Shown in pieces: positions 2,415 through 45,200 of a stretch of DNA of 64,000 nucleotides. The notes under the pieces were generated by a model. The model did not search any database. It was not told the origin of the DNA and saw nothing but the letters and a program-made list of their open reading frames with translations. Positions within the stretch are counted from its first letter, which is position 1, and each line of letters opens with the position of its first letter. The stretch covers positions 3,348,001 to 3,412,000 of the forward strand of contig OZ176057.1 in assembly GCA_964247055.1 (NCBI GenBank). Reading direction: 5' to 3'. The position numbers were made by a program, and so were the translations under genes. Source of the stretch: Paragordius varius (taxonomy: Eukaryota; Animalia; Nematomorpha).

Positions 2415-5400
2415 GTATACTTGGAAGAAAAAAAGATTTAAAAAAATTATTTTGTGGACTACTTTTTTGAAATAGGTGGTATTTTACGGGGGTAGCGGGT
2501 AAAAAGAGGGCCTAAGTTAAAAAAGCGAGTCGACTATGTTTGGCGCGATCAAAAATAAGTAAACATAAATCACATTTGAAATTGAATGGTCCAACACGTT
2601 CTCCGGAAAATAATTTCAACCTGTTTTTTACACAGGCTAGGCCCAAACTGGGGGCCTATTTCCAAAAAAGGGCGAAGCTTTTGTAGGGACAGTTATTAAT
2701 GATTACATTTTTTCCATATTTGGATTTTGTTGGGTTCACCGGTTTTCCGGAAACAGATCACAAAGTTACATGAAGAATCAGTTTTTAACGGGTAGCTCCT
2801 CAGCAGCTATCATCAAAATAAAAGCTTTGCTAATTTTTTTGCCTTTTAACAGGGAATACGTGAAATTTATATAGAATTTTTACGGACTCATACTTAGGGA
2901 AAAAAATCGATTAAAAAAATATTTTTGTGGATGATCTTTTTTGAAAAAAGTGGTATTTTAGAGGGCCTAAGTTAAAAAAGCGAGTCGACTATGTTTGGCG
3001 CGATCAAAAGTAAACATAAATCATATTTGAAATTGAATGGTCCAACACGTTCTCCGGAAAATAATTTCAACCTGTTTTTCACACAGGCTAGGCCCAAACT
3101 GGGGGCTTATTTTCAAAAAAGGGCGAAGCTATTGTCGGGACATTTATTAATGATTATATTTTTCAATGTTTGTATTTGAATTAATTCACCGGTTTTCCGG
3201 AAACAGATCACAAAGTTAAATGAGAAATCAGGTTTTAGCGGGTAGCTCCTTACCCAGCAGCTATCATCAAAGAAACGGGGGACTAAAATTTTTGCCTTTA
3301 AACAGGGAATACGTGGAATCCATATTGAATTTTTACGGTCTCATACCTTGGGCAAAAAATTGATTAAAAAAATATTTTTGTGGATTATTTTTTTGAAAAA
3401 GGTGGCATTTTACGGGGGTACCGGGTAAAAAGAGGGCCTAAGTTAAAAAAGCGAGACGACTATGTCCGGCGCGATCAAAAATAAGTAAACAAAAATCATA
3501 TTCGAAATTGAATGGTCCAACACGTTATCCGGAAAATAGTCTCAACCTGTTTTGTACACGGGTTAGGCCCAAACTGGTGGCTTAATTCCAAAAAAGGGCG
3601 AAGCTATTGTCGGGACATTTAATAATGATTACTTTTTTTCGATATTTGGATTTGATTGGGTTTACCGGTTTTCCGGAAACAGATCACAAAGTTACATGAT
3701 GAATCAGTTTTTAGCGGGTAGCTCCTTACCAAGAAGCTATCATCAAAGAAACGGTGGACTAAATTTTTTGCCTTTAAACAGTGAATACGTGGAATCCATT
3801 TTGAATTTTTACGGTCTCTTACCTTGGGCAAAAAATCGATTGAAAAAATATTTTTGTGGACTATTTTTCCGAAAAAGGTGGCATTTTACGGGGTAGCGGG
3901 TAAAAAGAGGGCTTAAGTTAAAAAAGCTAGACGACTAGGTTCGGCGCCATTAAAAATAAGTAAACAAATATCATATTTGAAATGGAATGGTCCAACACGT
4001 TCTCCGGAAAATAGCCTCAACCTGTTTTGTACACAGGTTAGGCCCGAACTGGTAGCCTAATTCTAAAAAAGGGCGAAGCTATTGACATTTATAAATGATT
4101 ATATTTTTTCGATGTTTGGATATGAATGGGTTCACCGTTTTTCCTGTACCAGATCACAACATTCCATTTTTATTTATATATATTACCAAAAATAATGTTT
4201 TATTATACATATATTTTTTAACATCCTTTACACATGATAGAAACTTTTTATTCAGCAGCTATCATCAAAGAAACGGTAAACTAAAATTTTTGCCTCTTAA
4301 CAGGGAATACGTGGAATCCATATTGAATTTTTACGGTCTCATACATTGGGCGAAAAATAGATTATAAGAAATATTTTGGTGGACTGTTTTTTAAAAAGCT
4401 GGCATTTTACGGGTAGCGGGTAAAAAGAGGGCCTAAGTGAAAAATGCGAGACGACTATATTCGGCGCGATCAAAAATAAATAAACGAAAATCATATTTAA
4501 AATTGAATGGTCCAAAACGTTATTCGGAAAATTGTATCCACCTGTTTTTTACACGGGGTAGGCCCAAACTGGGGGCCTAATTTCAAAAATGGGCAAAGCT
4601 TTTGTTGGGACATTTATTAATGCTTACATTTTTTCCATATTTGGATTTTTTTGGGTTCACCGGTTTTTTGGAAACAGATCACAAAGTTACATGAAGAATC
4701 AGTTTTTAGCGGGTAGCTTCTTACCCACCAGATATAATCAAAGAAACTCTTTACTAAAAATTTTGCCTTTTAACAGGGAATACGTGCAATTTATATTAAA
4801 TTTTTGGAATCATACCCTGGGCGAAAAATAGAATCATAAAAATATTTTTGTGGACCTTATTTTTAAAAAGGTGGCATTTTACGGGGAGAGCGGGTAAAAA
4901 GTGGGCCTAAATCAAAAAAGCAAGATGACTATATTCGATATTTGAAATTGAATGATCCAACACGTTCTCCATAAAATTGTCTCAAAGACACAATTTTTGT
5001 GGACTTCTGTTTTCAAAAAAACCCGTTTTTCACACGGGGTGGGCCCGAACTGGGGGCCTATTTCAAAAAACGGCGAAGCTATTGTCGGGGCATTCATTAA
5101 TGATTATTTTTCGATGTTTGGATTTGAAGGGGTCTACCGGTTTTCCTGTACCAGATCACAAAGCCAGCAATTTCAATTTTTATAAATTTATAGATTACCA
5201 TAAATAATGTTTTATTATACATATATTTTTTAACATCCTATACATATGATAGATACTCCCTCAGCAGCTCTCATCAAAGAAACGCTTGACTAAAAGTTTT
5301 GCTTTTTAACAGGGAATACGTGGATTTTATATCGAATTTTTACGGACTCATACCCTGGGCGAAAAATAGAATCATAAAAATATTGTGGACTTTGTTTTTT

Positions 5401-5800: not shown

Positions 5801-7809
5801 CGGCCAAAAATCCCTTAGGATATAAAAACATTTATATATTGATGCTGAATTATAGCCTTAGATCTCTAATTTTAAATTGTGTTATCAAATAATTTTAAAA
5901 AAACTTATTAACTTACATTGGTCAACATATAAGTCTTTGCTATGTTAAGTTGGATCATAAAAATAGTGTAAGATAATGAATGCATTTATTAGAAAAATAG
6001 ATTTAAACATATAGAAGGTATTTACAATAACAAACCACATAAATATAAATTAAGGATAATCAATGACGGGATTCGCATGATATATACAAAGATATACGTG
6101 TAAACTAATAGACAGATTATTTGCATCATAATACAAAATTATAATTATATTATCATTTATACAATTTAATATAAATCTAACAAATTTGAATTGGTATTTA
6201 ATGAAATATCTGAGGTAGAAATGGGAGATGTTTTCATAATATCATGCCGTCGTCCATATGTTTTAAACGCCGTAAATCATCCCTTTTCGGAAACTTTCTA
6301 ATGTTGAAGCAAAAATTTTAAATTTTATTTTGCAACCTCGGCATTTTTGTCTTTAGTTTTAAAAAAATTGCCCATTTTGGACGTGTTATAAATATCAGGG
6401 TTTACTATTATTTTATTAAAATAATGTTTTGCTTTTTATATATAATTTTTGCTTTATTTTAGTAAAATTTATTGAAATAAAGCACTTTCTCCAAAAAATA
6501 CTATTTAGCATATTGTTCCCAAATCCTACCATTTTCTGATATGGAGGAATTATATCCCTTGTAACATTGATCTATCAAATTATATATTTCATTAGGGTAT
6601 TTTTACACAAAAAAAATTTAAAATTATTTGGCCTACACGCGTTCCGAAAAATCATTCCAAAATAACATACAATATATAATTGTTTGAGAATGACCTGCCT
6701 GTATTTAAAATTAACCCCTCAATTAAACCCTCCTGTTCCAAAAGGTATACTTAAATATTTTTTTACATATGCGAGGAATAGAATTGCTTTTTTATAACCT
6801 AGAGCTAACTAATATCCCCATAATATTCCGATTCCGGCCTTTCTTAATTCGCTGAGTACGGCTTCACCCTCTGTAAAATGCATTTTACAATATAAATACA
6901 ACTTTGGTTAAGGTAAATTTTCGTCTAGGCATGAAATGTATATTAATATTGAGAGCATTATTCCGTTCAAAGCCTTAGTTCTCCGCTTGAAATAACTGAT
7001 AGATAGTGTTTTATTCTCAGCGAAATTCACCATATTATAAATGACGTGTTTAAAATTTTTGTCGAAATTATGAAAACTACCCTACCAAATTATTATAACG
7101 TAATGCAAACTTCTCGAACAACTAATCATATTTTATGAGTTTAATTATGATATTAGTAATTTACTCATAAATGCAAAAATATTAATCAATATATTAATTG
7201 ACCCTTGAATAGGGTCGCATCCTCTCTTAAATAAGCCATTGTATGAAATAACGTAAGCCAATTTATAGACAACCATATGGATTCAATCATTATCATTGAT
7301 AGGTATTGTATAAAATGCATAGTTAGACTAGTGCTAGTACCTTAGTAGGGCTTTATGCTTTGAAATATGCCATCCTTTTAAAATTTCTAATACCAATTTG
7401 AAAATCCTAATAAACTTAAATTGAAATATAATTTTGATTTTTCTTATTTAAGTCAAATCAACAACTTAAAACTTGAAGACCCTTTCTGTAAAACACGCCG
7501 CTACGAAAATATAACTTGGCAACTTATATTCAGATATGGTTACATATGGAAACATTAGAAACTAATAATTTTTGACATAAGGAAAAAAATATATCAATCA
7601 AAGCGCTATTTTGGAATTAGCCTTTGGGCAGAGCCCTACCCAATGTAAAATAAGCCATGACATAAAATAACCTGGCATTAAATTAAATCAATAATTAAAT
7701 GTTGATTTTTTTTATTTTTAGATGAGCCAATATTTTACATCTACCCCTTGTTTAATAATAATTATTCCATTTTTAATAAATTATCGATTAGTTATATATA
7801 TATATATTA

Positions 7810-8251
7810 GGTTTCTATATAATATTATATATAGAAATAGAATCGGGACACAGCAGAGTAAATAATGAATTAAAAATATTTGTCCAAGCATATATTATAC
7901 AAAGAAATTTGATTTCCAAAAAAATTATAAATTTAAGAGTGTTTTATTGTTTATAAATACGGGTTAATAGAATATGAATAGTTCATCTACTGCTGGTATA
8001 TAAAATATTGTATATATATATATATATATATAAATTATCTAAAAATCACTGTTATTTTATTTACCCAGCAGTAAATGACTATTCATATTCTATTAATCCC
8101 GTTATTATAAAACAATATACTCTTAAAATTATATTTTTTTTTGGAAATCAAATTTCTTTGTATAATATATGCTTGGGACAAAATTTTTAATCCATTATAT
8201 ACACTGCTGTGTCCCAATTCGATAGGTATATAAGAGTTTATATAAAAGATC
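7810..8251. mobile_element. Palindromic MITE, PIF/Harbinger (Tourist)-like
   Basis: Long inverted arms (gggacacagcag...ctgctgtgtccc), GG termini, TTA/TAA flanks; orthologous copy at 38711-39131. Confidence 0.7.
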
Positions 8252-8309
8252 TAATTGCTTTTCAAAATTATAAAAAATTTTTTTACTAAATTTTGACCGT
8301 TTATCAAAA

Positions 8310-8388
8310 ATGAAGATATTTTTTGCCATCTTATTTGTAACAATGTGTATTTTGTTTCAATTTAAACATGCGTTCGCTGGAGACGGTG
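8310..8388 (+). CDS. Signal-peptide exon (exon 1) of secreted micro-exon gene, copy A: MKIFFAILFVTMCILFQFKHAFA-GDG
   Basis: ATG, basic n-region, hydrophobic core, A-F-A cleavage motif; G|GTAATT donor; 74-nt intron ending ttttgcag; 77/79 nt identical to 39191-39269. Confidence 0.85.
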
Positions 8389-11300
8389 GTAATTGATTTT
8401 TAATATAATTTATAAATTCATATTTAGCATTTCCGTATATAATGTTTAAAATTTTTTTGCAGTCTCAAAGCGCTCAGCATGTAACTTTATTTATAATATT
8501 TTTCAAGGCTTCGATCCTAACTGGCTCTAGAGATTTGGGAAGCACAGTTTCAAGGCTTATGAATCTATTTTAGTTGTTTCATAACATTTATTTTCAAATC
8601 GGTTTTCTATAAAATAAAAATAAAATCTTCAAAGGTAGGAGAATCGGTTTCAATTGCAACCCGCTAATTTCGGTTCCACTTTTTTTGAGCTGGTTAGATT
8701 GAAGCCCTGTTTATGATTACTTTAATACACAAATTGAATTATTTTATAAACCATTTTTCAATCAAAAGCAACATTTTTTCATCCCGCAACATTCCTTCAA
8801 GCAAAGACAAGATTTCAACCAACAGCAACAGTTTTTTAGCAAACGCAACAACAATCGAAAAACTGCGTTTTTTAAAAATTGTCTTCGCTTGAAAAATATT
8901 GCGTTTGCTAAGAATGTTGCGTTTAATTGATACAATATGGCGTTTGTTTGAAAAAATGTTGCCTATGACTTATAAATAATATCTTAATAATAATTTTTCC
9001 ATACAGATGAAGATTATTACGGGTATTCGTATTTATATATTATTACTAACCAAAAAATAATAAAATAATATGATTTAAAAACCTTTAATCATTTTGAAAA
9101 TACACCAGTATATGAAAAAACAGCTAAATGGAAATAAAAAATAGGTTCCTATTATTACAGTGTGTGCAAAAAAAATTTTTTTTGAGATAGATTATGACCA
9201 GCGTATTCATTTGCCGCAAAAATTTTTATTTGTTGACAACCTAGTTTCTGAAATATTGAGAGAAAATCGAAATCGGAAAAAAGTGAAAATTAAGGATAAT
9301 TAAGGATAATTTAAAAAATAATGATAAAATCTGAAATATTATCGTTTATTAACATTTTAGGGGATATTTTCAATATATAAATAGCCTAAAATCATATAGT
9401 TAGGGATTCTATAAAATTTCGGGTCAAAAGATGGCGTTTTTCTTTTATCACACTTAAACAAAAAAATTAATGAAACTATATTAAAATATTTTTTTTAATA
9501 TTTACTACCTAAACTCACTATTAAAATATTAGCATTCATATTTATTTAGGAAAAACTTCTATATCAAAATAAAACCAAAAATATTGATTTTTAATTTTTG
9601 CATTTTGTCATGTGGTTTATGAGTGTATAAAAAATTTATACTGTTTTATTTTGGATTCTTAAATGAGTGGGAATTATTAAGTATATAATTTATGCAAAAT
9701 AGGATTGAAAATTAGTTAAATATCAACCAACAATCCGTACAAATCCCAATACAAATATTAATTTGTCATAAAACAGACTTGTTTAAGGAAATTGTAAGGA
9801 TTGTTGGTTGATATCCACTACTTTTAGATCCTATTTTGCATAAATTATATACTTAATAATGCCTAATCATGTAAGAATTCAAAATAAAACAGTATAAATT
9901 TTTTATATACTTATAAACCAGATGACAAAAAAATGCAAAAATAAAAAAAACAATATTTTTGGTTTTATTTTGATTTAGAAATTTATTTTACTGAATATAA
10001 TATGAATGTTAAGATTATAATAGTGAGTTTAGGAAGTAAATATATAAAAAAAAATATTTTTATATAGTTTCATTAAATTTTTTTGTCTTTTAAGTGTAAT
10101 AAAAGAAAAACGCCATCTTTTGACCCGAAATTTTATAGAAAACCTAACTATATGATTTTAGGCTATATTTATATATTGAAAATATCCCCTAAAATGATAA
10201 TAAACGATAATGATTCAGATTTTATCATTATTTTTTGAATTATCCTTAATTATCCTTAATTTTCACTTATTGCCCGATTTCGATTTTCTCTCAATATTTC
10301 AAAAACTAGGTTGTCAATAAATAAAAAATGTTGCGGCAAATGAATACGCTGGTCATAAGCTATCTCATGAAAAAAAATTTTTTCATTAAATCAAAACGAC
10401 CCTCTTTTTTGCACACAGTTTTACATTACTTTGTTTATTTAAGGACAAATTTGTTTTTTAACACATGCTACTGTGTTACTAATCTTATAAAAATAATGTA
10501 AATAAGCCAGCATAAATTTGCATTCTAATAAAATGACCAATCAAATCGAAGTGTTGAGAAAATTTGCGCTTTTTACAGGGGTCCAAAAAATTTTAAAATT
10601 TTGAATTTTACATAATTAAATTGTTTTTATATAACACTGGACAACAAATTTTTCTGCCACTTGAGTTTTTTGCATTTTCTGATATTTAGTATCATTTTAA
10701 CAGTAAATCTGATATAAAAATTATAACTCGATGGAAGAATTTTGTATAATTTGATTTTTTGATTATGCGCCCTCTTTATAAAAATTTTACTAAAAAATGG
10801 TTTTCTTTAAAAATATACAAGTAATGCCCATTTGTAATATATCATTCGAAAGAGTAATAAAAACTCTATAAAATGCATACTAATATGTATTACATCGACA
10901 ATTAATATTGGACACAAAGAGCGACAAACGCGCGAAGCGAGACCATTTTTTTTAAATATTATATTTTTAAAACTAATGGATGAAAATAGCTCAAACTTTG
11001 TTTAGATGGTATGAATGTCCAAAGAAGATAACAAAGTTATTTTGATTAAAACATTTTTTATTGCTTTTATGTCCTCAAAACAGCCATTTTTAAGTTTTTT
11101 GTTTTTTAAAAATTACCATCTCATCAATATTAATTTATTTTCTTTACGAAGCTGATAATTTCGAAATTTTAAAGATAAAAATAAAATTTAAGGTATTTTT
11201 GAACTTTTATAGCCATTATGTAATAAATTTATAGTTATAACTATGCATTTTAGTATCCACTAGGTAAAATATTTAAGATAATAATTTTAATTGAAAAAGC

Positions 11301-14300
11301 AAACCAGCTTTTTCAAACATTTTTTTTAAATTAAATACTAATATAACCCTAATAATTATATTAAAATAATTTATATGATTTTCATAGTTTGTCAGTGAAA
11401 ATTCTTGATTTATTTAAGGATTGAAAATTTCGACCATTTAAATCCAAATAACTTTATCATCCGATTGATTTAAATGACTTACTACCATTTAAAAGATGCA
11501 GTTTTTTGCGCTCTTTCGAATGATATAAAATACATGGCTTCATATCTAAAACTTTTAATTTTCAAAATTTCGAGTTTAATGTTAAATCGGGGCCAAAAAT
11601 TATCGATTAACTCTAATATAAAAAAATTCTTGCATGGTAGAATTTTCTTTTTAGATATACTAATGTACTTTAATGAATTAAATTTTAAATTTACAAGAAT
11701 GGCAGTTAAAAAAAGTTAAAATTTGGTGTCTAGTGTAATTTATGATAAGTAATATTTATTGGGGTAAACATTTGGCTCTTAAATAAATCATATTAAAAAA
11801 TCTGCGCAAATTGGCCATTGTCCTGATACTTTGAGAAATTACCACAAAAACGGTAACATCTCTCTTGTATCGCCCAAAGGCAATAAACAAAAAATACCTG
11901 ACAAGAATACAAAAAGTCAAAATAATCAGTTCAAATATTAAACATTTGCCCAAATAAATTATCATAATTAGAAATCATAATATATATTAAATTAATATTT
12001 AATTATTTGTAGTGAAAGTAAGCATTTTTTTTTAATTTCTATCGAACGAATAAATGTTTATATTAGATAATTTTTTTTTAATAACTAATATGATATAGTT
12101 ATTAATAAAAATCTATAAGGTCCTTAGGATAAGTTATTTAAAATGTAAAAAATATCATTTTGAAAACTATCCAAAATCTAATGATTTCTCTCAATTTTAT
12201 ACCATTTACAGCTCAAATTGACCCTTGAACAATTAAATGTGTTTTCGAACTAATATTATTCATTTTAAGATGAAATATATCTTTATGGCATAGTTTATTA
12301 TTTTTTTAGTATTATTTTAATTTTAAACAAATTATTTTCAAAAAATATATAATATAGAGGTAATTTATAATTAATTTTAGGGTGAATTTAAGTCCAAGGA
12401 TGAATTTGAATTATTCAAGGGTAATTGTTTAAGGGTGATGATTGTAAATGTTATATTTTTATTTAAGGCAAAGGTGTTCAACACAAAAGGCTTCGCGCAC
12501 CGCACATTAAATTTAATAATGGGCAGTTTTTGTTGATGTCACCAAAAAAACCATAGAAACGAAAAAATTGATCGCGATACTTTAGATAATATCTTTTATA
12601 TCGTCTCCTTCCCTGTCTAAAGCGTTTTATATATTTTTGGTTGTTAACTTGAAGGGCATTTTAAGTCGCATTTATTAGGGGTGCAGAGAAAGAACATTTA
12701 TTTGCGCTTCAAAAGCGGTGTTTTTAATTTTTGATTAATATTTATTATAGTAGTTTCCCCAGGTATGGTACCATTTGGCTTTATATAATATAACTTTTTA
12801 ACCATATACCACATATTCAATTTCATTATTTGTTATTATTATAGATGAGTAAGAATATTATTTAATTTGACCACAATTCGTTTTATATTTTATGTTATAA
12901 TTACATTTATTGAATTAGATATCAACTGGGTAAATTAATATATTTATAATTATAATTATATAAAATTCTACCAAACAAATATCCAAATAGACGCCATAAT
13001 CCTTGATATCATAAAATTTATTTCAAATATCTGTATATAAGTATACATAAAATTGTTAAATTTAAATAAAATAATTTACAAATATCTTTAAAAATCCAAC
13101 CACATTTGATTTGACCATATAAATTATTTAATTGATTGTGTTCACAATTTCCATTTCTATCAGCCCTATTTTTCAGTGCATATATGTAAAAAAAGGCTCA
13201 TTTCTGGCACTCGTTACATGAATCAATCCCCTTGTTTCTAAAAATAATTAATAATAAACCGTGGACATGACACGACACCACTCATAGTTGAGTGATTTTT
13301 ATAAATATTATACAAAATAATAACTTTCAAATACCTATTTTTTGAAATAAAAAGGCGCCTGGTGTATCAGCCTCCTTTCCTCTCCCCTAACTAAGTGGTC
13401 AATTCTACTGTGATTTCCAATAAAACATAATTGAGTTATATTGTTAACAATCATTTATCAATGTCGGGCACCAATGCAGCAAAAATTGAAATTCAGAAAC
13501 TTAACTTAAAAGATACATGTTTTTTTAAAAAGAATTATATTTAAAATCCGTTTATTAAAAACACTCATCATATCCAAAATAAACAGTATGTATATTACAA
13601 TCAATTATATTAAATCAAAATTGTGTACATTTAATATCTTCACAAAATTTATATAATTTTATAAATAAATTATTTTTGGCATGGTGTAATTCCTTTTATA
13701 ATGTATAATATAATGTAATTAGCATTTTCGTTTTTCTATTTTCTCCCCAAAAAGTCTCCTTCCTTAACCAATAAGTTTCATTTTATATGTTGCAAATTTA
13801 AATTAATAACTGTCTTTTATTTATCCATTTTCTCTAAGAATGAAGCTAATTAAAACTATAAAGTTTTGAGTAAAAATTGATACACAACGTGAAAATATAA
13901 AGACAAATATTTTTATAACAGACAATCCTTAAAACCTTTATTTTTTTAGATCTAGGTCTTGATGAAAATGGTGAAGAGATATAGACAGTAATTATTAATA
14001 AATTTTAAACAATTTGTTTTAATTGTTATCACTTCATTACCGTTTCACTTTTTTGATTAGTTCAATATCAAATCAATAGGGTATGTTATATATAATAATT
14101 TTAACAATTATACATATTTTATTTCACAATGCATTTTCTCCCAAACTTAGATGAATAAAACCTAATATTTTTCTATTACCATATATCAACACTTTTTAAT
14201 CAAACTTTATACTTATTTTAATTAATTGCCCTTATAAAATTATTATTTTAAGGTTTTATATGAATATATGTTCATATAGAATATTATATATCCCTTATTT

Positions 14301-14736
14301 TTTAAATTTTAGTCAAAATAACTAAATTTGCATTAAGGGTATAAGTAAATAATGTTGTTCTGAACCGAATCAACATGGCATATTATAAAAGACAATAAAA
14401 TACTCTAAATATAATTAAAATTATTTTTAAACAGATAAATATTGAGTTTGATTGTAAATGTGTTTTTCAAGGCTTCAACTAATTTATATGTAATTAATTT
14501 TTGTGCCATCAAATTTTTTTTTAAATATTCATTTTGATTTTTAGATGTATCCAAATCAAAATGTTCCATGTATCAAATTATTTAATTCTGGCTTAATTAA
14601 TATTGCTTAAACCAATAAACAATTTGTGCTTATTCTCCCAAATAAATATTTAGTAGCCTATGTATTATTTTTTATCAGGATCATCTTAAAAACAGACGTT
14701 ATAAACACAAAGTTTTCTTTAAATTTAAGATTTTAA
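8310..14736 (+). CDS. Putative micro-exon gene for a small secreted protein, copy A (splice path and frame unresolved)
   Basis: AG/GT-flanked islands with positional counterparts in copy B: 8310-8388, 8463-8480, 9007-9028, 12013-12017, 12751-12762, 12845-12848, 12919-12929, 13164-13185, 13950-(13970 or 13987), 14061-14080, 14313-14338, 14435-14453, 14545-14569, 14679-14736. Many intervening introns are 70-110 nt. Confidence 0.62.
8749..8981. mobile_element. Small TACCATTT-family MITE with aacgcaacattttt-type subterminal repeats (intronic)
   Basis: Inverted gcaacatttt/aaaatgttgc repeats; paralog 40770-41004 and dispersed copy 63315-63543 have TACCATTT...AAATGGTA ends. Confidence 0.7.
9158..10421. 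mobile_element. 1.26-kb foldback non-autonomous Tc1/mariner-like element (intronic, copy A only)
   Basis: CAGTGTGTGCAAAAAA terminus, ~600-bp inverted arms around a short spacer near 9750-9790, TA flanks; empty site ctattattacattattttg at ~41161 in copy B. Confidence 0.85.
10635..11735. mobile_element. Non-autonomous Chapaev3-like (CMC) DNA transposon (intronic, copy A only)
   Basis: CACTGGACAACAAATTT...AAATTTGGTGTCTAGTG termini with TAA target duplication; closely similar copy at 18477-19589; absent from copy B. Confidence 0.85.
12200..12453. mobile_element. TACCATTTAC-family MITE (present in both duplication copies)
   Basis: TA-flanked TACCATTTACAGCTCAAATTGACCCTTGAACAA...GTAAATGTTA; ortholog 41980-42212. 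Confidence 0.75.
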
Positions 14737-15304
14737 GTATAGTTTGATCCGTTTGATATTAGTTGCAATAATTATTTTCCTTTACAAAAAATAAATATTA
14801 TGACATATATAGAGCTTTGTTTAGAATTTACTTTAATTGGAGTAAAAATGAAATTTTTAACAACTTATGTGTAGTCAGAAAAAAATTAATTACGGATCAT
14901 GCCCAAACTAAGGATATTCAGAATCCTGTGACAAAGTTTTTATGAGAAGCTTTTTATTTTGGGAGAAGTTAGTATCTAGAAATATACCTGCAAGTTTCAT
15001 ATTTTACGCTCTGATTTTAATGTAAAAATGGGGGTAATTGTAAATAATTTGAAACTACTTAGAAAAGTAGCACAAAGCGTTAGTGCTAAAAATTATCAAA
15101 ATTCTTATAAAGCGATGAAGATAAAAAAACTAGATTAAATATGTCAAAAACCCGATTTTCGCGATATTTCAATGTATGAAGATTGATGTCGCTTGGTCTT
15201 TTAAAAATTGGCTATATTATAGCTAAAAATGTTATATTCTACAAGAAATAAATTTTTTGTAAAATATAAAAATAAAAATTACAACAAAAATTTAAATATT
15301 ATTA

Positions 15305-15392: not shown

Positions 15393-17650
15393 TTATAAAT
15401 CTGGGAAATGCTGGTTTTATGATCTGTTTCCGGAAAACCGGTAGGCCCATTCAAATCCAAATGTCGGAAAAATATAATCATAAATGAATGCCCCGACAAT
15501 AGCTTCTTTAGGCCCCCAGTTCGGACCCACCCCGAAAAAACGGGTTTTGACACAATTTTCCGGAAAACGTTTTGGACCATTCGATTACAAATATGATGTT
15601 TTTTACTTTTTTTGATTGCGCCGAACATGGTTGGCTCGCTTTAATTTAGGCCCACTTTTTACCCACCCCCCCTCACGCCGTAAAATGCCATTTTTTTAAA
15701 ACAATGTCCACAAAAATCATTTTTTGAATCTATTTTCGCCCAGGGTATGAGACCTTAATAATTTAATGATGATTCCAGATATATCCTGTTAAAAGGTAAA
15801 AATTTTAGTTCTGAGTTTTTATATTGGCTGTTGGTAAGGAGATACCCGCTAAAAACTGCCCCGTCATATCGAAATAGCGGGCCTTTGTGGCTTAATTTTA
15901 GGAAACCTCTCAGGCCATATTAGTTTAACAGGTGCTTTGAATATTACCCTTAACTATAGAAAAATTTAAGTAGTGAGATTTTTAAATTAGCCGTTAATTA
16001 GTCCCTTCACGGCCTGAAAAAAACGCCACCATAGAATGATTTTTTAGTTTTGAGAAAATTCCAAAAACAAATGAGAGCATATGGAACCAATTATGATTTC
16101 AGGTCTCCGTAAAAAGGCAAAAATTTTAATTAGCGCTTTTTTTGTATCAACCTTTGGGTAGGTAGCTAGCACCCTAAAACTGCGCCACCATATTGAAATT
16201 GTGTTTAGGAGTTATTTTTCAGGAAACTTATCAGGCCACATAAGTTTAATAAGGGTTTGAAATATTACCCGTAAAAAAGCAAAAATTAAATTCCAGCGGA
16301 TTTTTTAAATTTGCCGTTAATTAGGCCGTTTACGCTCTAAAAAATGACCAATCATTAAACTATTATTTAGTTTTGTAGCTATTCTACCAAAAACTATTAA
16401 GAACATAAGGAATGAATGATGGCAGGTATTTTCCGTAAAAAGGCAAAAATTAATCAAGCGCTTTTTTTGTATAAGCCTCTGGTTAAGGAGCTACCCGCCG
16501 CATTGGTTAGGTGTTAATTTTCAGAAAATTATCAGGCCATATAAGTTCAATAAGGGCCTGAATTACCTGAAAAAGGCAAAAATTTAAGCCAAGCGATTTT
16601 ATTGAATTAACTGTTAATTAGGCCATTTGCGCCTTAAAAATTGCGCTATCATTTAGCTATCATTTAGTTTTGATGCCATTATTCCAAAAACTATTAACAA
16701 CATATGAAATGAGATTTTAGTTATTCCCCTATAAAGGCAAAAAATTTTATCGAACTTTTTTATATTGGTCTCTGGGTAGGGGGGTACCCACCCTATATCT
16801 CCGCCACCATATCGATACATCGTGATTTTGGAGGCAAATTTTTGAAAACTTATCAGGCCATATAAGTTAAATAAGGGCTTGAAATATTACGTGTAAAAAG
16901 GCCAAAATTTAAGTAGAGCGGTTTTATTAAATTACCCCTTAATAAGGCCCTTGCACTGGAAATGCGCCAGAATGACTTATTGGTTTTGATGCAATTTTTC
17001 GAAAATCTCACGACAACATATGGAATCAATCATGATTTCAGGTATTACCCGAACGGCAAAAATTTCAATCGAGGATTATATGTTTCGCCCCTGGTTTAGG
17101 GGCTACCCGCGTAAAACTGCGTTATCATACCGATACAGCATGCCTTTGGAGCCAAATTTCAGAAAATCTATGAGACTGATAGGAACATATGGAATCCATG
17201 ATAATTCCAGATTTTCTCCATATAAAGGCAAATATTTTTCTCAACGCTTTTTTTTACCTCCCCCGGGGTAAGGAACTACCCGCCAAAAACTAAGCCACTA
17301 TATAGAAATTGCGTTGTTTTGGAGCTATTTTACAGAAAATTTATAAAGCCATATGTGCTTATTAAAGTTTGAAATATTACCCGTAACCAAGTAAAAATGA
17401 GGTCAGGCGTTTTTTTATTAGTGGTTAATTTGGGGTCTTGATGCCATAAAAATCCGCCATCATATAACGGTTATTTAGTGTTGAGGTATTTTTTCGAAAA
17501 ACCCAAATAATCCATCAGACGATGGTAAAGATGATTCCAAATATTTGCCCAATAAAGGCAAAGAATATAACTCAACGCTTTTTCCATATAAGTCTATGGG
17601 TAGAGGACTACCTGCCATATGAAAATGGCGTGGTTTTGGAGCTAATTTTA
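15305..17650 (-). repeat. Inverted, more diverged block of the same satellite: one ~470-bp trimer-type unit, then ~12 monomers of ~160 bp alternating two types
   Basis: 15400-15860 is the reverse complement of the 2415-5800 unit; aggcaaaaa-like anchors at ~16115, 16277, 16441, 16574, 16735, 16899, 17054, 17226, 17390, 17556. Confidence 0.88.
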
Positions 17651-18415: not shown

Positions 18416-18476
18416 AGCTCCTAGTATATTTATATATCACACATCCTTTTCTAATTGAAATACTATCGGTTCATTA

Positions 18477-19589
18477 CACTGGACAACAAATTTTTCTGCC
18501 GCTCGAGTTTTTTGCATTTTCTGATATTTAGTATCATTTTAACAGTAAATCTGAAATAAAAATTATAACTCGATGGAAGAATTTTGTATAATTTGATTTT
18601 TTTGATTATGCGCCCTCTTTATCAAATTTTACTAAAAAATGTTTTTCTTTGAAATATACAAGTAATGGCCATTTGTAATGTATCAATTCGAAAGAGTAAT
18701 AAAAACTCTATAATATCCATACTAATATGTATTACATCGACAGCTAATATTGGACACAAAGAGCGACAAACGCGCGAAGCTAGAGCCTTTTTTAATTATT
18801 ATATTTTTAAAACTAATGGATGAAAATAGCTCAAACTTTGTATAGATGGTGATGAATTTCCAAAAAAGATAACACAATAAAGTTTTTTTGATTAGAACAT
18901 TTTTTTATTGCTTTTATGTCACTCAAAACAGCCATTTTTAAGTTTTTTGTTTTTTAAAAATTACCATCTCAATATTAATATATTTTCTTTACTAGGCTGA
19001 TAATTTCGAAATTTTAAAGATAAAAACAAAGTTTAAGGTATTTTTGATCTTTTATAGCCATTATGTAATAAATTTACAGTTTTAACTATGCATTTTAGTA
19101 TCCACTAGGTAAAATATTTATGTAATAATTTTTATTGAAAAAGCAAACCAAAAGCTTTTTCAAATATTTTTTTTAAATTAAATTAATATAACCCTAATAA
19201 TTATATTAAAATAATTTATATGATTTTCAAATTAGTTTGTCTGTGAAAACTCTTGATTTATTTGGGGATTGAAAATTTCGACCATTTAAATCCAAATAAC
19301 TTTTACATCCGATTTATTTAAATGACTTACTACCATTTAAAAGATGCAGTTTTTTGCGCTCTTTCGAATGATATAAAATACATGGCTTCATATCTAAAAC
19401 TTTTAATTTTCGAAATTTCGAGTTTAATGTTAAATCGGGGCCAAAAATTATCGATAAACTCTAATATAAAAAAATTCTTGCATGCTAGACCAATTTTCTT
19501 TTCAGATATACTAATTATGTACTTTAATGAAATAAATTTTAAATTTACAAGAATGACAGTTCAAAAAAGTTAAAATTTGTTGTCTAGTG
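18477..19589. mobile_element. Non-autonomous Chapaev3-like DNA transposon, second copy
   Basis: CACTGGACAAC...GTTGTCTAGTG termini, TTA target duplication; high identity to 10635-11735. Confidence 0.87.
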
Positions 19590-19932
19590 TTAAGGTAAAA
19601 ACGCTGTTTTTGGCATATAACAACAATACGTTATTCAGGGAAAAGCTATTAGATATATTTCGCTCGTAAATATTATTGGTTTTAATTTTTGCAGTAATTG
19701 ATGTCCATGTGTTTATATTTTGAATTTGTGGCTGCAGGTTTTTTTCAATCGAAAATGCTGCCTGCGACGCCATTTATGTGATGCAATCCTGGCAAAAGAT
19801 AATCACCGAGTTAATCTTATATGAAATTTTTTAATTATTAACATATCATTATTTTTATAAAATCTTTTAAAATTATAATTTATATCTTAGTTTTATAATT
19901 TTATTTCGTTTTTGTGTTAGAATAAGTGAGAT

Positions 19933-36902: not shown

Positions 36903-38671
36903 TATATACAAAGAGATATACGTGTAATCTAATAAACAGGTTATTTGCATCATTATACAAAATTGTAAATAGAAATATATTATCATCACTACAATTTGTA
37001 TTATACATATAAAAGTATAAATCTAACAAATATGAATAGGTAACAGTCTCTTAATCATTCAGAGGTGATAGAAATGGTAAATGTTTTCATAATATCATAC
37101 CGTCGTTCATCATGTTTCAAAATACGTTACTACTCGTCTCACCGAAATTTTGCCGTAAATCAACTCAACTTTTTGGGAAAAACTTTTTAATGTCAAAAGT
37201 TAAAATGATAAAATTCTATTATGCAAAATCGGCATTTTTGTCTTTAGTTTAAAAAAATTAGACCATTTTGGACGGGTATAAAATATCAGGGTTTTGGAAC
37301 CCTGTATCTAAAATATATTTAATAAAAATATTGTTTTGCATTTTATATATAATTTGTGCTATATTTTAGTAATATTTATTGAAATGAAGCATGAAGCCTT
37401 CTTCAAAAATATTATTTATATTGTTCCCAAATCCTGCCATTTTATAATATGGAGAAGTTACCACAAAAGGGTGATAATTTTCTGTAATCCCTTGTATCAT
37501 TTATCTATCAGAATTATTCATTAGGGTTTTTGTGGACACATAAATTAATAAAAAAAATATTTTTATATTGGGCCTACACGCGTTCCGAAAAATCATTCCA
37601 AAGTAACATAGAATATATAATTGTTTATGAATAACACACCGCTTCATCCCCACAATTAGGCCCTAACCCGTATCAAAAGGTATATTTAGGAAAAAATCTG
37701 CAAAAATCATGGCTTTACACAATTTCTAGAAAACGTGTAGACCTAAATATTTTTTTACATATGCGAGGAATAGAATCGCTTTTTTATAACCTAGAGCTAA
37801 CTAATCTCCCCATAAAATTCCGATTCCGGCCTTTCTTAATTCGCTGAGTACGGCTTCACCCTCTGTAAAATGCATTTTACAATATAAAATTTTGAAAGTA
37901 TTTTTCGGTTTATAGCCTAAGTTCCCCGCTTTAATTAACTGATAGATAGTGTTTATCCCCTGCGAAATTCACCACATTATAAATGACGTGTTCAAAATTT
38001 TTGTGGAAATTATGAAATCATATGAATTAATTAAATTCTGTTTTAGCTTTATCCTACCATATTATTATAACGTGATCCAAACTTCTCGAAAAACTAATAA
38101 TATTTTATGAGTTCATTTAATATTGATAATTTACTCATAATGCAAAAATATAATCAGAAATATATTAATTAACCCTTGAACAGGGTCGCATCCTATCTTA
38201 GATAAGCCATTGTATGAAATAACATAAGCCGATTTATAGACCATATGAATTTAATCATTATCATAGGTATTGTATAAAATCGATAGTTAGAAGGGTGCCA
38301 GTCCCTCAATATGCCATCCTTTAAAAATTTCTAATACCAATTATCTTAATAAAATTTAATTGAAACATAATTTTAATTTTTAATATTTGAGCCAAATTTC
38401 AACTATATTATATTACTTAAAACCGAAAGGCCTTCGCTGTAAAACACGCCACTACGAATTTTTGACATAAAGGAAAAAAATATATCAATCAAAGCGCTAT
38501 CTTGTAATTAGCCTTTGGGCACAGCCCTACCCAATGTAAAATAAGCCATGGCCCTGGCATTAAATTGAGTCAATAATTGAATGTTGATTTTTTTCATTTT
38601 TAGATGAGCCAATATTTTAAATATACCCCTTGTTTAATAATTATTCCATTTTTAATAAATTACCGATTAGT

Positions 38672-38708
<37 letters not shown>

Positions 38709-38710
38709 TA

Positions 38711-39131
38711 GGTTTTTATATAATATTATATATAGAAATAGAATCGGGACACAGCAGAGTAAATAATGAATTGAAAATTTTTGTTCAAGCATATATTATA
38801 CAAAGAAATTTGATTTCCAAAAAAATTATAAATTTAAGAGTGTTTTATTGTTCATAAATACGGGTTATAGAATATGAATAATTCATCTACTGCTAGTAAA
38901 AAAAATATTATATTATATATATTATATAAATCACTGTTATTTTATTTACCCAGCAGGAGATGAAATATTCATATTCTAATTAACCCGTTTTTATAAAACA
39001 ATAAAACACTCTTATCCAAATTTTTTTGGGAAATTAAATTTCTTTGTATAATATATGCCTGGGACAAAAATTTTTAATTCATTATTTACACTGCTGTGTC
39101 CCAATTCTATATATAATTTTATATAAAAACC
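38711..39131. mobile_element. Palindromic PIF/Harbinger-like MITE, ortholog of 7810-8251
   Basis: GGTTTTTATATAA...TTATATAAAAACC termini, TTA/TGA flanks, long inverted arms. Confidence 0.72.
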
Positions 39132-39190
39132 TGATTTCTCTTCAAAAATACAAAAATTTTTTTTTACTAAATTTTGTCCGTTTATCAAAA

Positions 39191-39269
39191 ATGAAGATAT
39201 TTTTCGCCATCTTATTTGTAACAATGTGTATTTTGTTTCAATTTAAACATGCGTTCGCTGAAGACGGTG
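39191..39269 (+). CDS. Signal-peptide exon (exon 1) of secreted micro-exon gene, copy B: MKIFFAILFVTMCILFQFKHAFA-EDG
   Basis: Tail of ORF 39044-39277; G|GTAATT donor; 75-nt intron ending ttttgcag; differs from copy A by one synonymous (TTT/TTC) and one G/E change. Confidence 0.85.
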
Positions 39270-42200
39270 GTAATTGATTTTTAATATAATTTAAAAATTC
39301 ATATTTAGCATTTCCGTATATAATGTTTAAAAAATTTTTTGCAGGCTCAGACCCAGGTAATTACTTAATTTATGATATTCGAGGCTTCGATCCTTAACCG
39401 AATCAACCCAGCTCTAGAGATTTGGCGATCTCAGTTTCAATGCTTAATCTATTTTAATTTATTCATAACATTTATTTTTGATCCGGTTTTCTATAAAATA
39501 ACACTGATCAACAAGGTTTTGCACCACCCCATTATTTTTGCATTTTCTGATACCTAATGGCATGGAAAGGCCAAAACAAAAAAGAAAATTGAGGCCACCA
39601 ATAGGATTTTTCCGAAATTTAATTTTTAAATTTATATTTAATTTAAAAATAACAATCATTCCTCGTGTATATATGTTTAAATATTCAAACGCACAAGTCG
39701 ATACAAGTAATATTCCATGCATGAATAACAAAATTCTAGGCATTAAATAAGATACTAAGCAAGCTAAGAGCCAAAGTATTAAAAATCTAAAAGGGGCTTA
39801 TGTATAGTGTGATAGATTCGGGCGGCTGCACAAGCTCTGCATATCCCCCAAGCGATCCAATTATGCCAGATATGGCAAAGATAACAATAAGTAATCGTAA
39901 AGCCCGATAAGAGAGACTTGCAAGCAAAATCCAGGCAAATTGACATGTCAAATTAACCAATTCACAGAATAAAGTTAGATAAATTCTACAATTAAATTGA
40001 ATAAAAAGATTAGGTAAATACAAATGGTCCAATCCCATAATAGTAAATTCTACTAAAAGTGGCTGCACAACATCCATCTGAAATTAAAAATACAAAACAA
40101 CCAATAATTTTAAAAAATAAAGTATATCCACTAGGTATAAATAAAGGATTTTTTGTAAGAACCAACTCAAGAAAAAAAGCCTAATAAGTACTCGAAAGAA
40201 CGAAAACTAACAAAAAAAATATAGCCTATCTAAAAGCCGAAGGTTTAAACCATAGAATGCCTTTTTTAGTATTTTTTTAAAATTTTTTTATACGTATTAA
40301 AAATTCACTTGAAAGGAAAAGACTAAATTTTGATGTTTAAGTCCGTACTATTTTTTTCTCTCTGATATTTAAATGACATATTTATATTCAAAAGATAGAG
40401 TTTAAAACGCTTTATTAAATGATATTAAGTTTATAATATAATAACATTTTATTATAAAGTTATATGTAATTTTCTCTCGATTTTCTCTTGTTTTTGAAAA
40501 ATTGTAAAACCTATAATACTTCAAAATTCTGATTGGCGGGATCAAAAAATTTTTCACATTCGGTTTTAAAACACTGAAATTAGTCATAATTTAAAAGTAT
40601 GAGTGGTGGTGCTCAAAAATGTCCAAATTTGTCGACTAGTGTAATTCAAAGGTAGGAGAATCAGTTTTAATTACAATTTACCCGCTAATTTCAGTTCCAC
40701 TTTTTTTGAGCTGGTTAGATTGAAGCCTTGTTTATGATTACTTTAATACACAAATCGAAATATTTTCTATACCATTTTTCAATTAACAGCAACATTTTTT
40801 CATCCAAACGCAACAATTTTTCAAGCAAAGACAAGATTTCAATCAACAGCAACAGTTTTTAAGCAAACGCAACAACAATCAAAAAACTTGCGTTTTTAAA
40901 AATTTTTGCTTAAAAAAAATTGCGTTTGCTTGAAAGAATGTTGCGTTTAATTTAAAAAATGTTGCGTTTTATTGAAAAATGTTGCCTATGACTTAAAAAT
41001 GGTATCTAAATAATATTTTATTCTATACAGTTCAGTTTCTTCCCGGATATTTGTAATTATATATTTTATACCAACCAAAAAATAATTATGTAACAACCTT
41101 TATTATTTTGCAGACCAGTATACGAAAAAACAGCTAAATGTTGAAATGATCAATAGTGTCCTATTATTACATTATTTTGTTTATTTAATTTGGACAAAAT
41201 TTGTTTTTTAACACACGTTACTTTGTTACTAATTAACTAACATTAATGTAAATAAGCCAGCATAAATCCACATTCTAATACAAAAATGCCCAATCAAATC
41301 GTAGGGTTGAGAAAACTTGCGCCTATTACAGGGGTCAAAGTTTTTTAAAATTTAGAATTTTAAAATATTAAATTGGTTTTAAATAATCATTGATATTTGT
41401 AATATATATTGGGGTAAAGCATCTGGCTTTAACCAAATAAATCATATTAAAAAATGTGTGCAAATTTGCCACTGTCTAATACTAAGAAGTTACCACAAAA
41501 ATGGTAACATCTTTCTTGTATCATCCAAAGGCAAAAAAATAAAATCTGACAATTTTGATACTTTTATACTTGAGAATATATATTCATTTCATCAGTATAT
41601 TCATTGATATCCCCAATTTTATGGACAGTCTTAAAAACAATGGAAATTTTTGTTTTTTTTAAAGAAAAAGAGCCCAAAATGCAAAAAATTGAAAATAATC
41701 GGTTTAAATATTAAACAGTTATCCAAATAAATTAACATATTCTTAAAAGAACCTCATATATATTAAATTAATATTTAATTTTATATAGTGAAAGTAAGCA
41801 TTTTTATTTTTTAATTTCTATCCAACGAAAATTTAGTTTATTTTTAAATAAACTATTTTAACTAATATGATAAAAATGATAAAAATCTATAAGGTCCTTA
41901 AAATAAGTAATTCAAAATGTAAAATGTAAAAAATATTTTTTTAAACTCTATCCAAAAATAAAACTTTCTCTCAATTTTATACCATTTACAGCTCAAATTG
42001 ACCCTTGAACAATTAAATTATGGTTTTTAAACTAAACTCATTATTTATATGAATATCTTTATGGCATAGTTTATTATTTTTTCAGTATTGTTTTAATTTA
42101 AAAATTATTTTTAAAAAATATATAAAAATATAGGTAAATTTTAATTAAAACATATAATTTATTTTAGGGTATATTTGGATAGTTCAAGGATGAATTTGAA

Positions 42201-45200
42201 TCGTAAATGGTATATTTCAAAAGGCTTCGCGCACCGCACATTAAATTTAATAATGGGCAGTTTTGGATGATGTCACCAAAAAAACCATAGAAACGAAAAA
42301 ATCGATCGCAATACCTTATATAATATCTTTTATATCGTCTAATAATCCCTGTCTAAAGCGTTTTATATATTTTTGGTTGTTAACTTGAACTACAGGTTAA
42401 GTCGCATTTATTAGGGGCGCAGAGATAAAACATATATTTGCGCTTCAAAAGCGGTGTTTTTATTAATTGATTATTATTTACTGTAGTGGATGAGCCAGGT
42501 ATTGTATTGCCATTTGGCCTTATATAATATAACTTTTTGAACATATACCAGATCATTTCATTATTTGTTATCATTATTATTATTATAGATGAGTAAGAAT
42601 ATTTTTTAATTTGACCACAATTTTTGCTTTAAATTTTATGATATAATTACATTCATTGAATTAGATCTCATCAAATGGGTAAATTAATATATTTATAATT
42701 ACCATTATATAAAATTCTACCGAACAAATAAAATAGACGCCAAAAAATTTATTTTAAATATTTGTAGGAGTAAAGATTATAAGTAAACATAAAAATGTTA
42801 TAATTAAAAGAAAAAGATTTTACAAATATTTTTAAAAAAGCAACCAACTTTGATTTTACCATATATATAAATATTTAATTATTCACAATTTCCATTTCTA
42901 TCAGCCCCATTTTTCAATGCAAATATGTAAAGAATTAAAGTTAAATAGCATAATTCTATTTTTTATGTAGAGGCGTAGCTTTCATTTCTGGCACCCGTTG
43001 CATGAATCAATCCCTTCTATTTTAAAAATAATTAAATTTAAACCGTGGACATGACATGAGACCACTCATAGTTGAGTGATTTTTATAAATATTATAAAAA
43101 ATAATAACTTTCAAATACCTATTTTTTGAAATAAAATTAAAATAGCGCTCGGTATATCAGCCCCCTTTCCTAATTAAACTATTTTTGGCAAGTGATGTAA
43201 TTTTTTTATAATGTATAATATAATTAGGATTTTCAGTTATCTATCTTCCCCCAAAAAAATCTCCTTAACCAATTATATTTATTTATATTGATATTCTTTG
43301 CTCTTGGACTAGGAAACTATTTAATTTAATACAGTAACGATAGTTATTATTGACCTATTAGATATTTATTTGGCGAGTGTATATGTATGTTGCCATGTAT
43401 AAGTTTCATTTTATTTGTTGGAAATTTTATATTTATAACTGTCCTTTTTATCCATAATATTCTATAAGAATGAAACTAATTAAAATTAAAAGTTTAGAGT
43501 AAAAATTGAAATAATACAAGGTAAAGACATAGAGACAAATATTTTTTTGAAAGACAATTATCAAAACCTTTATTTTTTAGATATAGGTTATGATGAAAAT
43601 GGTGAAGAGATATAGACAGTAATTTTTGTAAGTATTAAACAATTATTTTAATTGCTATTACTTCATTACTTTTTCACTTTTTTGTCCTAATTTAACGTAT
43701 CTAGTTCGTTAATAATTTACTGTTCATTTTAGTTGAAATTTTATGTAACATTATCAAGTTTTAGATATAAAAAAATATTTTTTACAGTTTTGTGACTTCT
43801 AGACTCTAAAATGGGGACAGCTCCAAAACGCGCTGCAACAGCTGATAAAATAAAAATAAATTCAGTTTTACTGGTAATATGTAGCTTGAGAGCTTTTTAA
43901 AGTTAATTATCTATATTTTTAACCATATTATACATTTAATTGCCGGTTGCATTTGTGATTTAAGAAAATTATACAAAAAATGGCGGCAAAAATGTTGAGA
44001 TGAGGATTAACAATTTTACATTTTTTTAAAAATTATTTGTGTAATGCTCATAGCAGGCTAAATAAAATATATTCTCAAATTCGGCCTAATATCTTAAATA
44101 CTTTTTAAGATAATCAAATGTTAAATCGCTTTCGCATAAAATACTACCCCACAAAGTAATGGAGTGTAAAATATATTATTTACAGTCTACATTTAAATAA
44201 TTGCTTATATCACACGATTGTTGGGTAATCAAAAACGCAGTAGTTTATGGAAAAAGCAAAAAAATGTTGAATAAACAATCTTTTTTTTCCATACGCTTTG
44301 CAAATTGCCCTACTACAGTGTGAAATAAGCAACCATTAAAATGGATATTGTATTATGACCTTAATTTAAAAGTTAGGTACTAGGGGCTAAAAGTTATGCT
44401 ATTGTTAAAAACTATATTTTTCAGAGAGACCTATTCAATTTTTGTTTAAAATGGCCATTTATTTGAAATGTTTGTAATATAATGATATGAAAACCGGGTC
44501 ATTGTCATACGAGTTAAAATTACATTTAAATGAGCCATTAAACTTTTTCTTACTTAGTTAAATAAAGTAAATAATTGGATTTAAGAACTTCGGGGTTAAA
44601 CCCTATTTTGAAATTAATGTTGCACACTTAAGTATTTATATGTCAAAAGCTATATTTTAAAATTAAACAAAGCGTTATAAAATCAAGTTATCTAGTTATT
44701 GTTTTTGAAGTCTTTTCAAAATTCAGCTGTCTAAAACTCTCTTGATCAGCGTAAGGTTAATTTTATTCAAATTAGTATTATATTTAAGTCATTCAATTTT
44801 AAGCTAATAAATTTATTCTAAGATTGCACACCAGTTCCATTTCTAAGAAAATGACTAAAATTTTGAGCATCTTTTATATAAGCTACATTAAATCGGATTC
44901 GATGTAATTTGCTTTAGTTTAATAAAATTAATTTTAAAGCTTTAGCCAATATCTTTCAACATGTTAAACATTTTATATTGAGTTGCGTCGCAACGTTTTT
45001 ATGGTTTATATTAGATATCAAATTTTGATAATAATAATTATAATCATTAAAATAACGGTGGCTGAAATTTAAATTTTCTGAAAGCCAAACACACTAATAT
45101 TTTTCCAAAGAGGTCAGCTATACCGAAATATTTTATGTGTATGAAAAATTCTAATTGACACTTAATTCGTTAATTTACAAACATTTGATATTTGCAAAAA

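Follow-up and report, generated by a model that had tools for sequence, protein, structure and literature searches.

In the conotoxins and the Hessian-fly SSGPs, the 5' untranslated region, the signal peptide and the first intron are near-identical among paralogues, and the mature peptide changes at a rate above that of neutral DNA; the exon structures of both are ordinary, their paralogues numerous, and the conotoxins possess cysteine frameworks. Aphid bicycle genes are putative gall and salivary effectors. They combine a signal peptide with many micro-exons, diverge very fast and are recognised by gene structure and not by sequence; on average they have ~17 exons, which begin in phase 2 almost without exception, and their protein products carry CYC motifs (PMC9168663). 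The micro-exons of the schistosome micro-exon genes (MEGs) are mostly multiples of 3 and range from 6 to 81 bp, typically 15 bp, and in-frame skipping is possible (PMC10526429). The evolution of MEG proteins is accelerated (PMC10526429, PMC4350168). Ultra-short exons have been confirmed in plants by RNA sequencing (RNA-seq) together with reverse-transcription PCR, namely exons of 1 nucleotide (nt) in APC11 and VPS55 and an adjacent pair of 5 nt and 12 nt in rice, which shows that splicing can handle exons as short as 1-5 nt; annotation routinely overlooks them (PMC8831610). The stretch analysed here, referred to as the window, comprises 64 kb (G000:C8:3348001-3412000) of a 110.6-Mb, 44-contig assembly of the horsehair worm Paragordius varius. 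Our subject is a locus that is present twice in it, as copies A and B, and that may likewise join a signal-peptide exon to a series of micro-exons.

The locus probably represents a real spliced gene for a secreted peptide. That it is a lineage-restricted gene in two copies, whose small secreted product is assembled from micro-exons, has in our estimate about an even chance of being correct. The window is eukaryotic, very AT-rich (22-35% G+C) and contains relics of retro-element open reading frames (ORFs). Within it, a unit of ~9 kb occurs twice (A, ~6269-15293; B, ~37152-46746); its aligned parts are 82-85% identical, with copy-specific insertions between them, which bears out the duplication reported in a preliminary description of this DNA. 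The anatomy of the locus, its duplication and the contrast in conservation between its parts are features of the DNA itself.

This contrast is found at the 5' end of the gene. In the comparison of A with B, the leader, exon 1 and intron 1 form a block (8277-8462) in which 7 of 187 columns differ, compared with 18% for the whole alignment (binomial p=3e-9). The near-identity stops precisely at the acceptor of intron 1, and the 18 (A) or 12 (B) nt that follow, proposed as exon E2, are ~50% different. Purifying selection or gene conversion may have kept the leader, the signal exon and intron 1 near-identical. Exon 1 itself shows two differences in 79 nt, one of them synonymous and the other a G/E change. 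Its product consists, in copy A, of 23 signal-peptide-like residues followed by GDG, with a basic n-region, a hydrophobic core of 13 residues and an A-x-A site. Of the 472 ORFs in the window that begin with ATG and have 24 codons or more, 3 pass a crude signal-peptide rule, two of these being the gene copies; the 79-nt exon, previously described as encoding a typical signal peptide, is hence signal-peptide-like by this rule, and such ORFs are rare in the window. The third ORF passing the rule lies at 25455 (+) and starts MRVIRVVYLFLFAF. A genome-wide search for paralogues, which the preliminary description had suggested, located exon 1 at these two loci only, and no further paralogue of the gene was found in the 110.6-Mb genome by DNA or by protein search.

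Downstream of intron 1, the divergence between the copies is concentrated in some of the proposed micro-exons (coordinates in Table 1). E2, E3 and E5 together differ in 25 of 52 columns (about 50%; resampling P=0.006), and E2 contributes 9 differing columns out of 18. E3 is the best-supported of the proposed micro-exons: 11 of its 22 nt are mismatched and its flanks have ordinary similarity, the 11-mismatch window begins at 9007, the first base of the exon, and its acceptor ranks among the best 3% in A and B alike. In the alignment of ~5 kb, 10 or more mismatches per 22 nt occur at four places including E3, and two of the other three resemble alignment slips. A micro-inversion was considered as the origin of the E3 divergence and found unconvincing, the reverse complement matching only partly. 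E5 has 5 mismatches in 12 nt, a level reached by 5% of 12-nt windows. Over all islands together the excess has a resampling P=0.03; a Fisher test of exon versus intron mismatches (p=2.6e-5) overstates it, as the differences cluster.

At the level of codons, the proportions of non-synonymous (pN) and synonymous (pS) differences are 0.319 and 0.165 in the mature part and 0.117 and 0.130 in a non-coding control read in all frames (Nei-Gojobori). The ratio pN/pS is ~1.9 over 36 codons, a small sample, and non-synonymous change in the first half of this part amounts to ~2.7 times the neutral rate. The pattern suggests that E2, E3 and E5 are hypervariable and under diversifying selection, as known from secreted proteins whose counterpart is another organism or a partner that itself evolves fast. 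The above-neutral rate suggests selection for change, of the kind that acts on proteins encountering a fast-evolving receptor, a pathogen or a host.

Table 1. Positions of the proposed gene and its upstream elements in the two copies. Positions are counted from the first base of the window; exons are predicted.
Feature	Copy A	Copy B	Strand	Remarks
Imperfect palindrome, ~450 nt	7806-8255	about 38707-39135	.	directly 5' of exon 1 in each copy
Two TATA-like boxes	8227-8248		+	about 83 and 71 nt 5' of the ATG; copy B TATA-rich at the same place
Conserved 5' block (leader, exon 1, intron 1)	8277-8462		+	from the A/B comparison
Exon 1	8310-8388	39191-39269	+	79 nt; AAAATG context; ends in phase 1; donor GTAATT (copy A)
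E2	8463-8480 (18 nt)	39345-39356 (12 nt)	+	symmetric phase 1; acceptor TTTTTTTGCAG (A); donor CAG/GTAATT (B)
Read-through of E2 (two-exon alternative)	8481-8530, TAG 8528-8530	stop 39395-39397	+	precursor of 48 (A) or 43 (B) residues
E3	9007-9028	41031-41052	+	22 nt; enters in phase 1, leaves in phase 2
E4	12013-12017	41789-41793	+	5 nt, TGAAA; acceptor TTTGTAG, donor GTAAGC; identical in both copies
E5	12751-12762	42487-42498	+	12 nt; symmetric phase 1
E6	12845-12848	42589-42592	+	4 nt, ATGA, between TTATTATTATAG and GTAAGA
E7	12919-12929 (11 nt)	42665-42678 (14 nt)	+	E6 and E7 together 15 (A) or 18 (B) nt, back to phase 1
E8	13164-13185	42905-42926	+	22 nt
E9, last exon	from 13950, TGA 13960-13962	from 43581, stop 43591-43593	+
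E9 as a 38-nt island	ends 13987	43581-43618	+	followed by AATAAA 13997-14002 (A) or ATTAAA (B)

The micro-exon chain was proposed on the basis of islands bounded by AG and GT, and these bounds hold for all islands in both copies. The exon lengths (79, 18/12, 22, 5, 12, 4, 11/14 and 22 nt, A/B) could be reproduced, and the joined translations agree letter for letter with the two peptides given in the preliminary description. Splice-site quality was assessed with a strict filter that ignored frame and divergence and asked for YAG with a pyrimidine tract and for GTA[AT], conserved in both copies. It returned 11 islands in 8389-14800, five of which belong to the chain, E4, E6 and E8 among them; a slightly looser version also picks up E5 and E7 and adds, between E3 and the last exon, just two T-rich islands situated inside a repeat (12294-12359). 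Since the filter finds essentially those islands only, including every good island leads to the proposed chain. The G+C content of E2-E8 is 37-41% versus 24-25% in the introns.

Only part of what had been said of the introns and of the 3' end could be retained. Introns of 70-110 nt, said to be frequent, account for three of eight (74/75, 82/90 and 70/72 nt, the last two flanking E6), and the others measure 226 to 2984 nt. The three short introns belong to a size class also represented by introns of 71 and 73 nt in CCT chaperonin genes of the same genome. One CCT gene contains a 36-nt in-frame GT..AG insert (GTTTTTTTTC...ATAATAG; G000:C2, about 9804720-9804755) which breaks the conserved motif 'AILRE / IAVKHPAAK' and is likely to be a micro-intron. 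The additional islands downstream (14313-14736), up to six by the preliminary description and four by our count, diverge at the neutral rate and follow the E9 exon, which has stops in all three frames, so that they add no coding sequence.

With respect to phase, the predicted exons form units running from phase 1 to phase 1, namely E2, E3+E4 (27 nt), E5 and E6+E7 (15/18 nt), and it is these units, not single exons, whose skipping would preserve the frame. Phase 1 is the only phase in which E5 is open in both copies, as A acquires a stop in phase 0 and B in phase 2. Because E3 leaves in phase 2, copy B needs an intervening exon with a length of 2 mod 3, and E4 is the sole good island between E3 and E5 that fits. 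Intron 1 contains a further island of 7 nt (8428-8434) that would divide it into introns of 39 and 28 nt; it was discarded, since with it E3 of copy A acquires a stop.

A number of observations weigh against the chain as a whole or against its members. Contigs from three probable RNA runs of the same species were compared with 8200-14199, together with one DNA run of 'organism B'; none lies on exon 1, none contains a splice joint, and the sole match, 27 nt with 3 mismatches, is spurious. Likewise, none of the sequencing runs listed holds the locus as RNA. This negative outcome does not make the locus silent, as a stage-specific gene would escape and micro-exon transcripts are hard to assemble and call. 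The 61-residue model had no match among 5.8 billion protein clusters (length window 34-107 residues), nor had the 32-residue translation of exon 1 among 1.84 billion representatives of any length, and Pfam gave nothing significant, YfjL_N at E=0.081 being a chance match. The open frame, previously taken as an argument, is non-diagnostic: among 16 conserved islands passing a nearly strict filter there are 61 five-island chains open in both copies, and looser islands give hundreds of thousands of open chains. The same applies to the length differences between the paralogues being multiples of 3. In-frame length differences are not diagnostic here, as 33 of 80 (41%) short non-coding indels between the copies are also multiples of 3, because 3-nt indels are unusually frequent in the A/B alignment (24 of 84 indels in 7561-15293).

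Further points of this kind concern individual exons. The donors of E2 (copy A), E3 and E8 score only moderately in a genome-specific position weight matrix, which was built from 26 introns of CCT genes and is nearly uninformative, since donors in this genome are heterogeneous and in many cases GTTTTT. Divergence is not in excess in E4, E6, E7, E8 or the first coding bases of E9 (P=0.6), E8 with 3 mismatches in 22 nt being at the neutral level. The reading frame of copy B is what argues, weakly, for the 5-nt E4. The 4-nt E6 is a weak candidate to which no observation lends positive support, and the chain lacking it is also open in both copies, ending in another frame of E9. E8 carries no frame information, as none of its three frames contains a stop in either copy. 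The acceptor of E9 coincides with the end of a short repeat that has at least 255 candidate copies genome-wide. This repeat (13866-13951 at the locus) is ~45-85 nt long with the core AACGTRAAAATATAAAGACAAATATTTTT, occurs several times per locus and on both strands, and often ends in a T-run plus TAG; several genomic copies end, like the E9 acceptor, in a T-run plus TAGAT. Finally, exons of 4 and 5 nt flanked by introns of ~700 nt are unusual in animals. We consider the odds of a micro-exon chain through at least E3 and E5 to be evenly balanced, and the exact nine-exon model including the 4-nt exon to be doubtful.

Three other explanations have to be weighed. The first is a gene of two exons, in which exon 1 joins a second exon beginning at 8463 (39345 in B) that is translated through the E2 donor to a stop, the downstream islands being chance pairs of AG and GT. 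The read-through is open in both copies, over 21 (A) and 16 (B) codons, the resulting peptides align with two one-codon gaps and share the end ...GFDP, an AATAAA follows in A at about 8613, and exotic exons of 4 or 5 nt are not needed. This structure agrees just as well with a conserved block that stops at the acceptor. However, 19% of random conserved acceptor and phase combinations are equally long and open in both copies, copy B has a 1.1-kb insertion where A has its AATAAA, and there is a good CAG/GTAATT donor at the end of E2 in copy B. In a variant of this explanation, a 27-nt GT..AG segment directly 3' of E2 in both copies (8481-8507 in A, 39357-39383 in B) would be removed as a micro-intron, which preserves the read-through frame and has a parallel in the 36-nt case of a CCT gene. 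Such an excision was judged unlikely, the acceptors AAG (A) and GAG (B) being poor. Either variant leaves unexplained why divergence clusters in the splice-bounded islands 9007-9028 and 12751-12762, and we regard a two-exon gene as unlikely. Should it alone be true, the locus would be an ordinary pair of small orphan secreted-peptide genes.

The gene may also be real with exon 1, E2 and perhaps E3 correctly placed and the remainder different, be it by skipping of E6, by another last exon or by exons outside the duplicated unit. When E6 is skipped, the 13950 exon is read in another frame and yields a longer tail that is identical in both copies; when E9 is skipped and 14313 used, a stop follows after four codons in both. 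The indifference of E8 to frame and the 61 alternative open chains leave room for such arrangements, but between E3 and 13950 the filter yields essentially the islands of the proposed chain plus the two T-rich ones in the repeat, and we consider a differing remainder quite improbable. At the other extreme, the locus may be dead or not expressed. The signal-like ORF would then be a relic or a chance product, 8277-8462 a short gene-conversion tract or a conserved non-coding element, and the divergent patches mutational clusters (complex indels, micro-inversions). The missing RNA match and the lack of a homologue in the searches made agree with this, as do strongly divergent patches outside the proposed exons (for example 8110-8122, 8241-8257 and 14374-14387) and an excess divergence over all islands that drops to P=0.03 once clustering is counted. 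Yet the end of the conserved block would then have to coincide with an AG and its long T-tract, and the bounds of the E3 cluster with AG and GT to the base; moreover, the signal-like ORF is rare in the window, and ATG, frame, donor and acceptor have been retained in both copies at a neutral divergence of 12%. We hold a dead locus to be hardly probable.

Transcription, every one of the splices, secretion and any function are what we infer for the preferred spliced micro-exon gene, which would operate as follows. Transcription would begin behind a TATA-like box. Exon 1 would provide the signal peptide and end in phase 1, and removal of the 74-nt intron would follow; the signal peptide is predicted to be cut after A-F-A. 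The mature peptide would be built by the micro-exons, with reasonable support for E2, E3 and E5, the need for a continuous frame for E4, and E6-E9 as the most likely continuation. The expected product is a precursor of ~60 residues giving a mature peptide of ~37 residues that is acidic, rich in Tyr and Phe and free of cysteine. In copy A it contains a K-R pair that is absent from copy B and that could be a processing site. After the duplication, the leader, signal exon and intron 1 would have stayed near-identical while the first half of the mature peptide diverged. The central idea of the preliminary description, a spliced and fast-evolving small secreted peptide invisible to an ORF scan, fits the comparison of the paralogues; its nine-exon chain has neither an RNA nor a protein match and competes with many alternative open chains. 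A role as effector, toxin or in host interaction, also put forward there, can only be surmised.

Each gene copy is preceded by the palindrome listed in Table 1, which is genome-wide unique to the two gene loci. Its arms in copy A (7813-7924 and 8136-8247) are 85% complementary, the value for both copies being about 81-85%, and the centre is (TA)n. The right arm holds the TATA-like boxes, which may be surmised to form a putative promoter. A mirror gene at the far (left) end of the palindrome was considered and rejected, the minus strand offering only ATG GAA TAA. Intron 3 of copy A harbours an element of 1.1 kb (10631-11736) that is absent from copy B and has a counterpart ~7 kb downstream (18473-19590); because the two are 93% identical, it is judged to be a young mobile-element insertion. 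Outside the gene, a relatively G+C-rich tandem array occupies 2438-4159 (475-nt unit, 3.7 copies, 85% match), with diverged further copies to about 5760 and one inverted copy at 15416-15858, just past gene copy A.

If the predicted splicing is true, a signal exon followed by micro-exons would have originated independently as a design for fast-evolving secreted proteins, and the exons of 4 and 5 nt would be near the lower limit known for animals. The locus would then yield a definite candidate for a secreted peptide in a lineage of parasites that has received little study, and a class of genes in this genome would be overlooked by ORF-based and standard gene finders. In its most far-reaching form, the proposal is that an insect-parasitic horsehair worm, hence an animal that is neither flatworm nor aphid, builds a hypervariable secreted peptide from micro-exons, including constitutive ones of 4 and 5 nt, arranged in phase-1 cassettes of one or two exons, and has thereby evolved a MEG-like system of its own; we advance this tentatively, as a possibility with the greater part of the odds against it.

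How far the likeness to described systems extends can be judged feature by feature. Like the schistosome MEGs, the proposed gene would have a signal-peptide exon followed by very small exons and much longer introns. MEGs have the greater part of their coding sequence in micro-exons of no more than ~36 nt; in the model this part would be supplied by seven predicted internal exons measuring 4-22 nt. The products are in both cases small, lineage-restricted, secreted (here by prediction) and devoid of known domains, and standard ORF and gene finders miss them. Schistosome MEGs further generate protein variants through alternative splicing and are expressed in secretory glands. Accelerated protein evolution is also seen here (pN 0.319 versus 0.12 in non-coding DNA; P=0.006 for E2+E3+E5; small sample). 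In contrast to the MEGs, five of the seven internal exons (22, 5, 4, 11/14 and 22 nt) have lengths that cannot be divided by 3, E2 and E5 being the ones that can, and because of this the skipping of a single exon would shift the frame. Moreover, the gene belongs to another phylum, exists in two copies and not as a superfamily, and gave no sequence similarity to MEGs in Pfam or in the two protein-database searches. The MEG-like architecture claimed in the preliminary description thus holds as a similarity of design and does not extend to membership, the symmetry of the exons and a shared sequence both being absent.

With the aphid bicycle genes, the locus has in common a predicted signal peptide, proposed micro-exons and rapid divergence; it differs in its mixed phases, in cassettes that return to phase 1, in the absence of cysteine from either mature peptide and in a product of ~37 residues. 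The conserved signal block joined to a hypervariable mature part resembles the conotoxins and the SSGPs, whereas the two paralogues and the proposed micro-exons do not. For the smallest exons, the nearest parallel is the pair known from rice, as the 5-nt E4 stands beside the 12-nt E5; the plant cases belong to conserved housekeeping genes and are confirmed, while those described here are predicted. With plant exons of 1-5 nt established, E4 and E6 may conceivably be exons of 5 and 4 nt. Since the symmetry or phase features of schistosome MEGs and aphid bicycle genes are not found and no sequence is shared with either, the proposed gene is best viewed as an analogue, and not a member, of these families.

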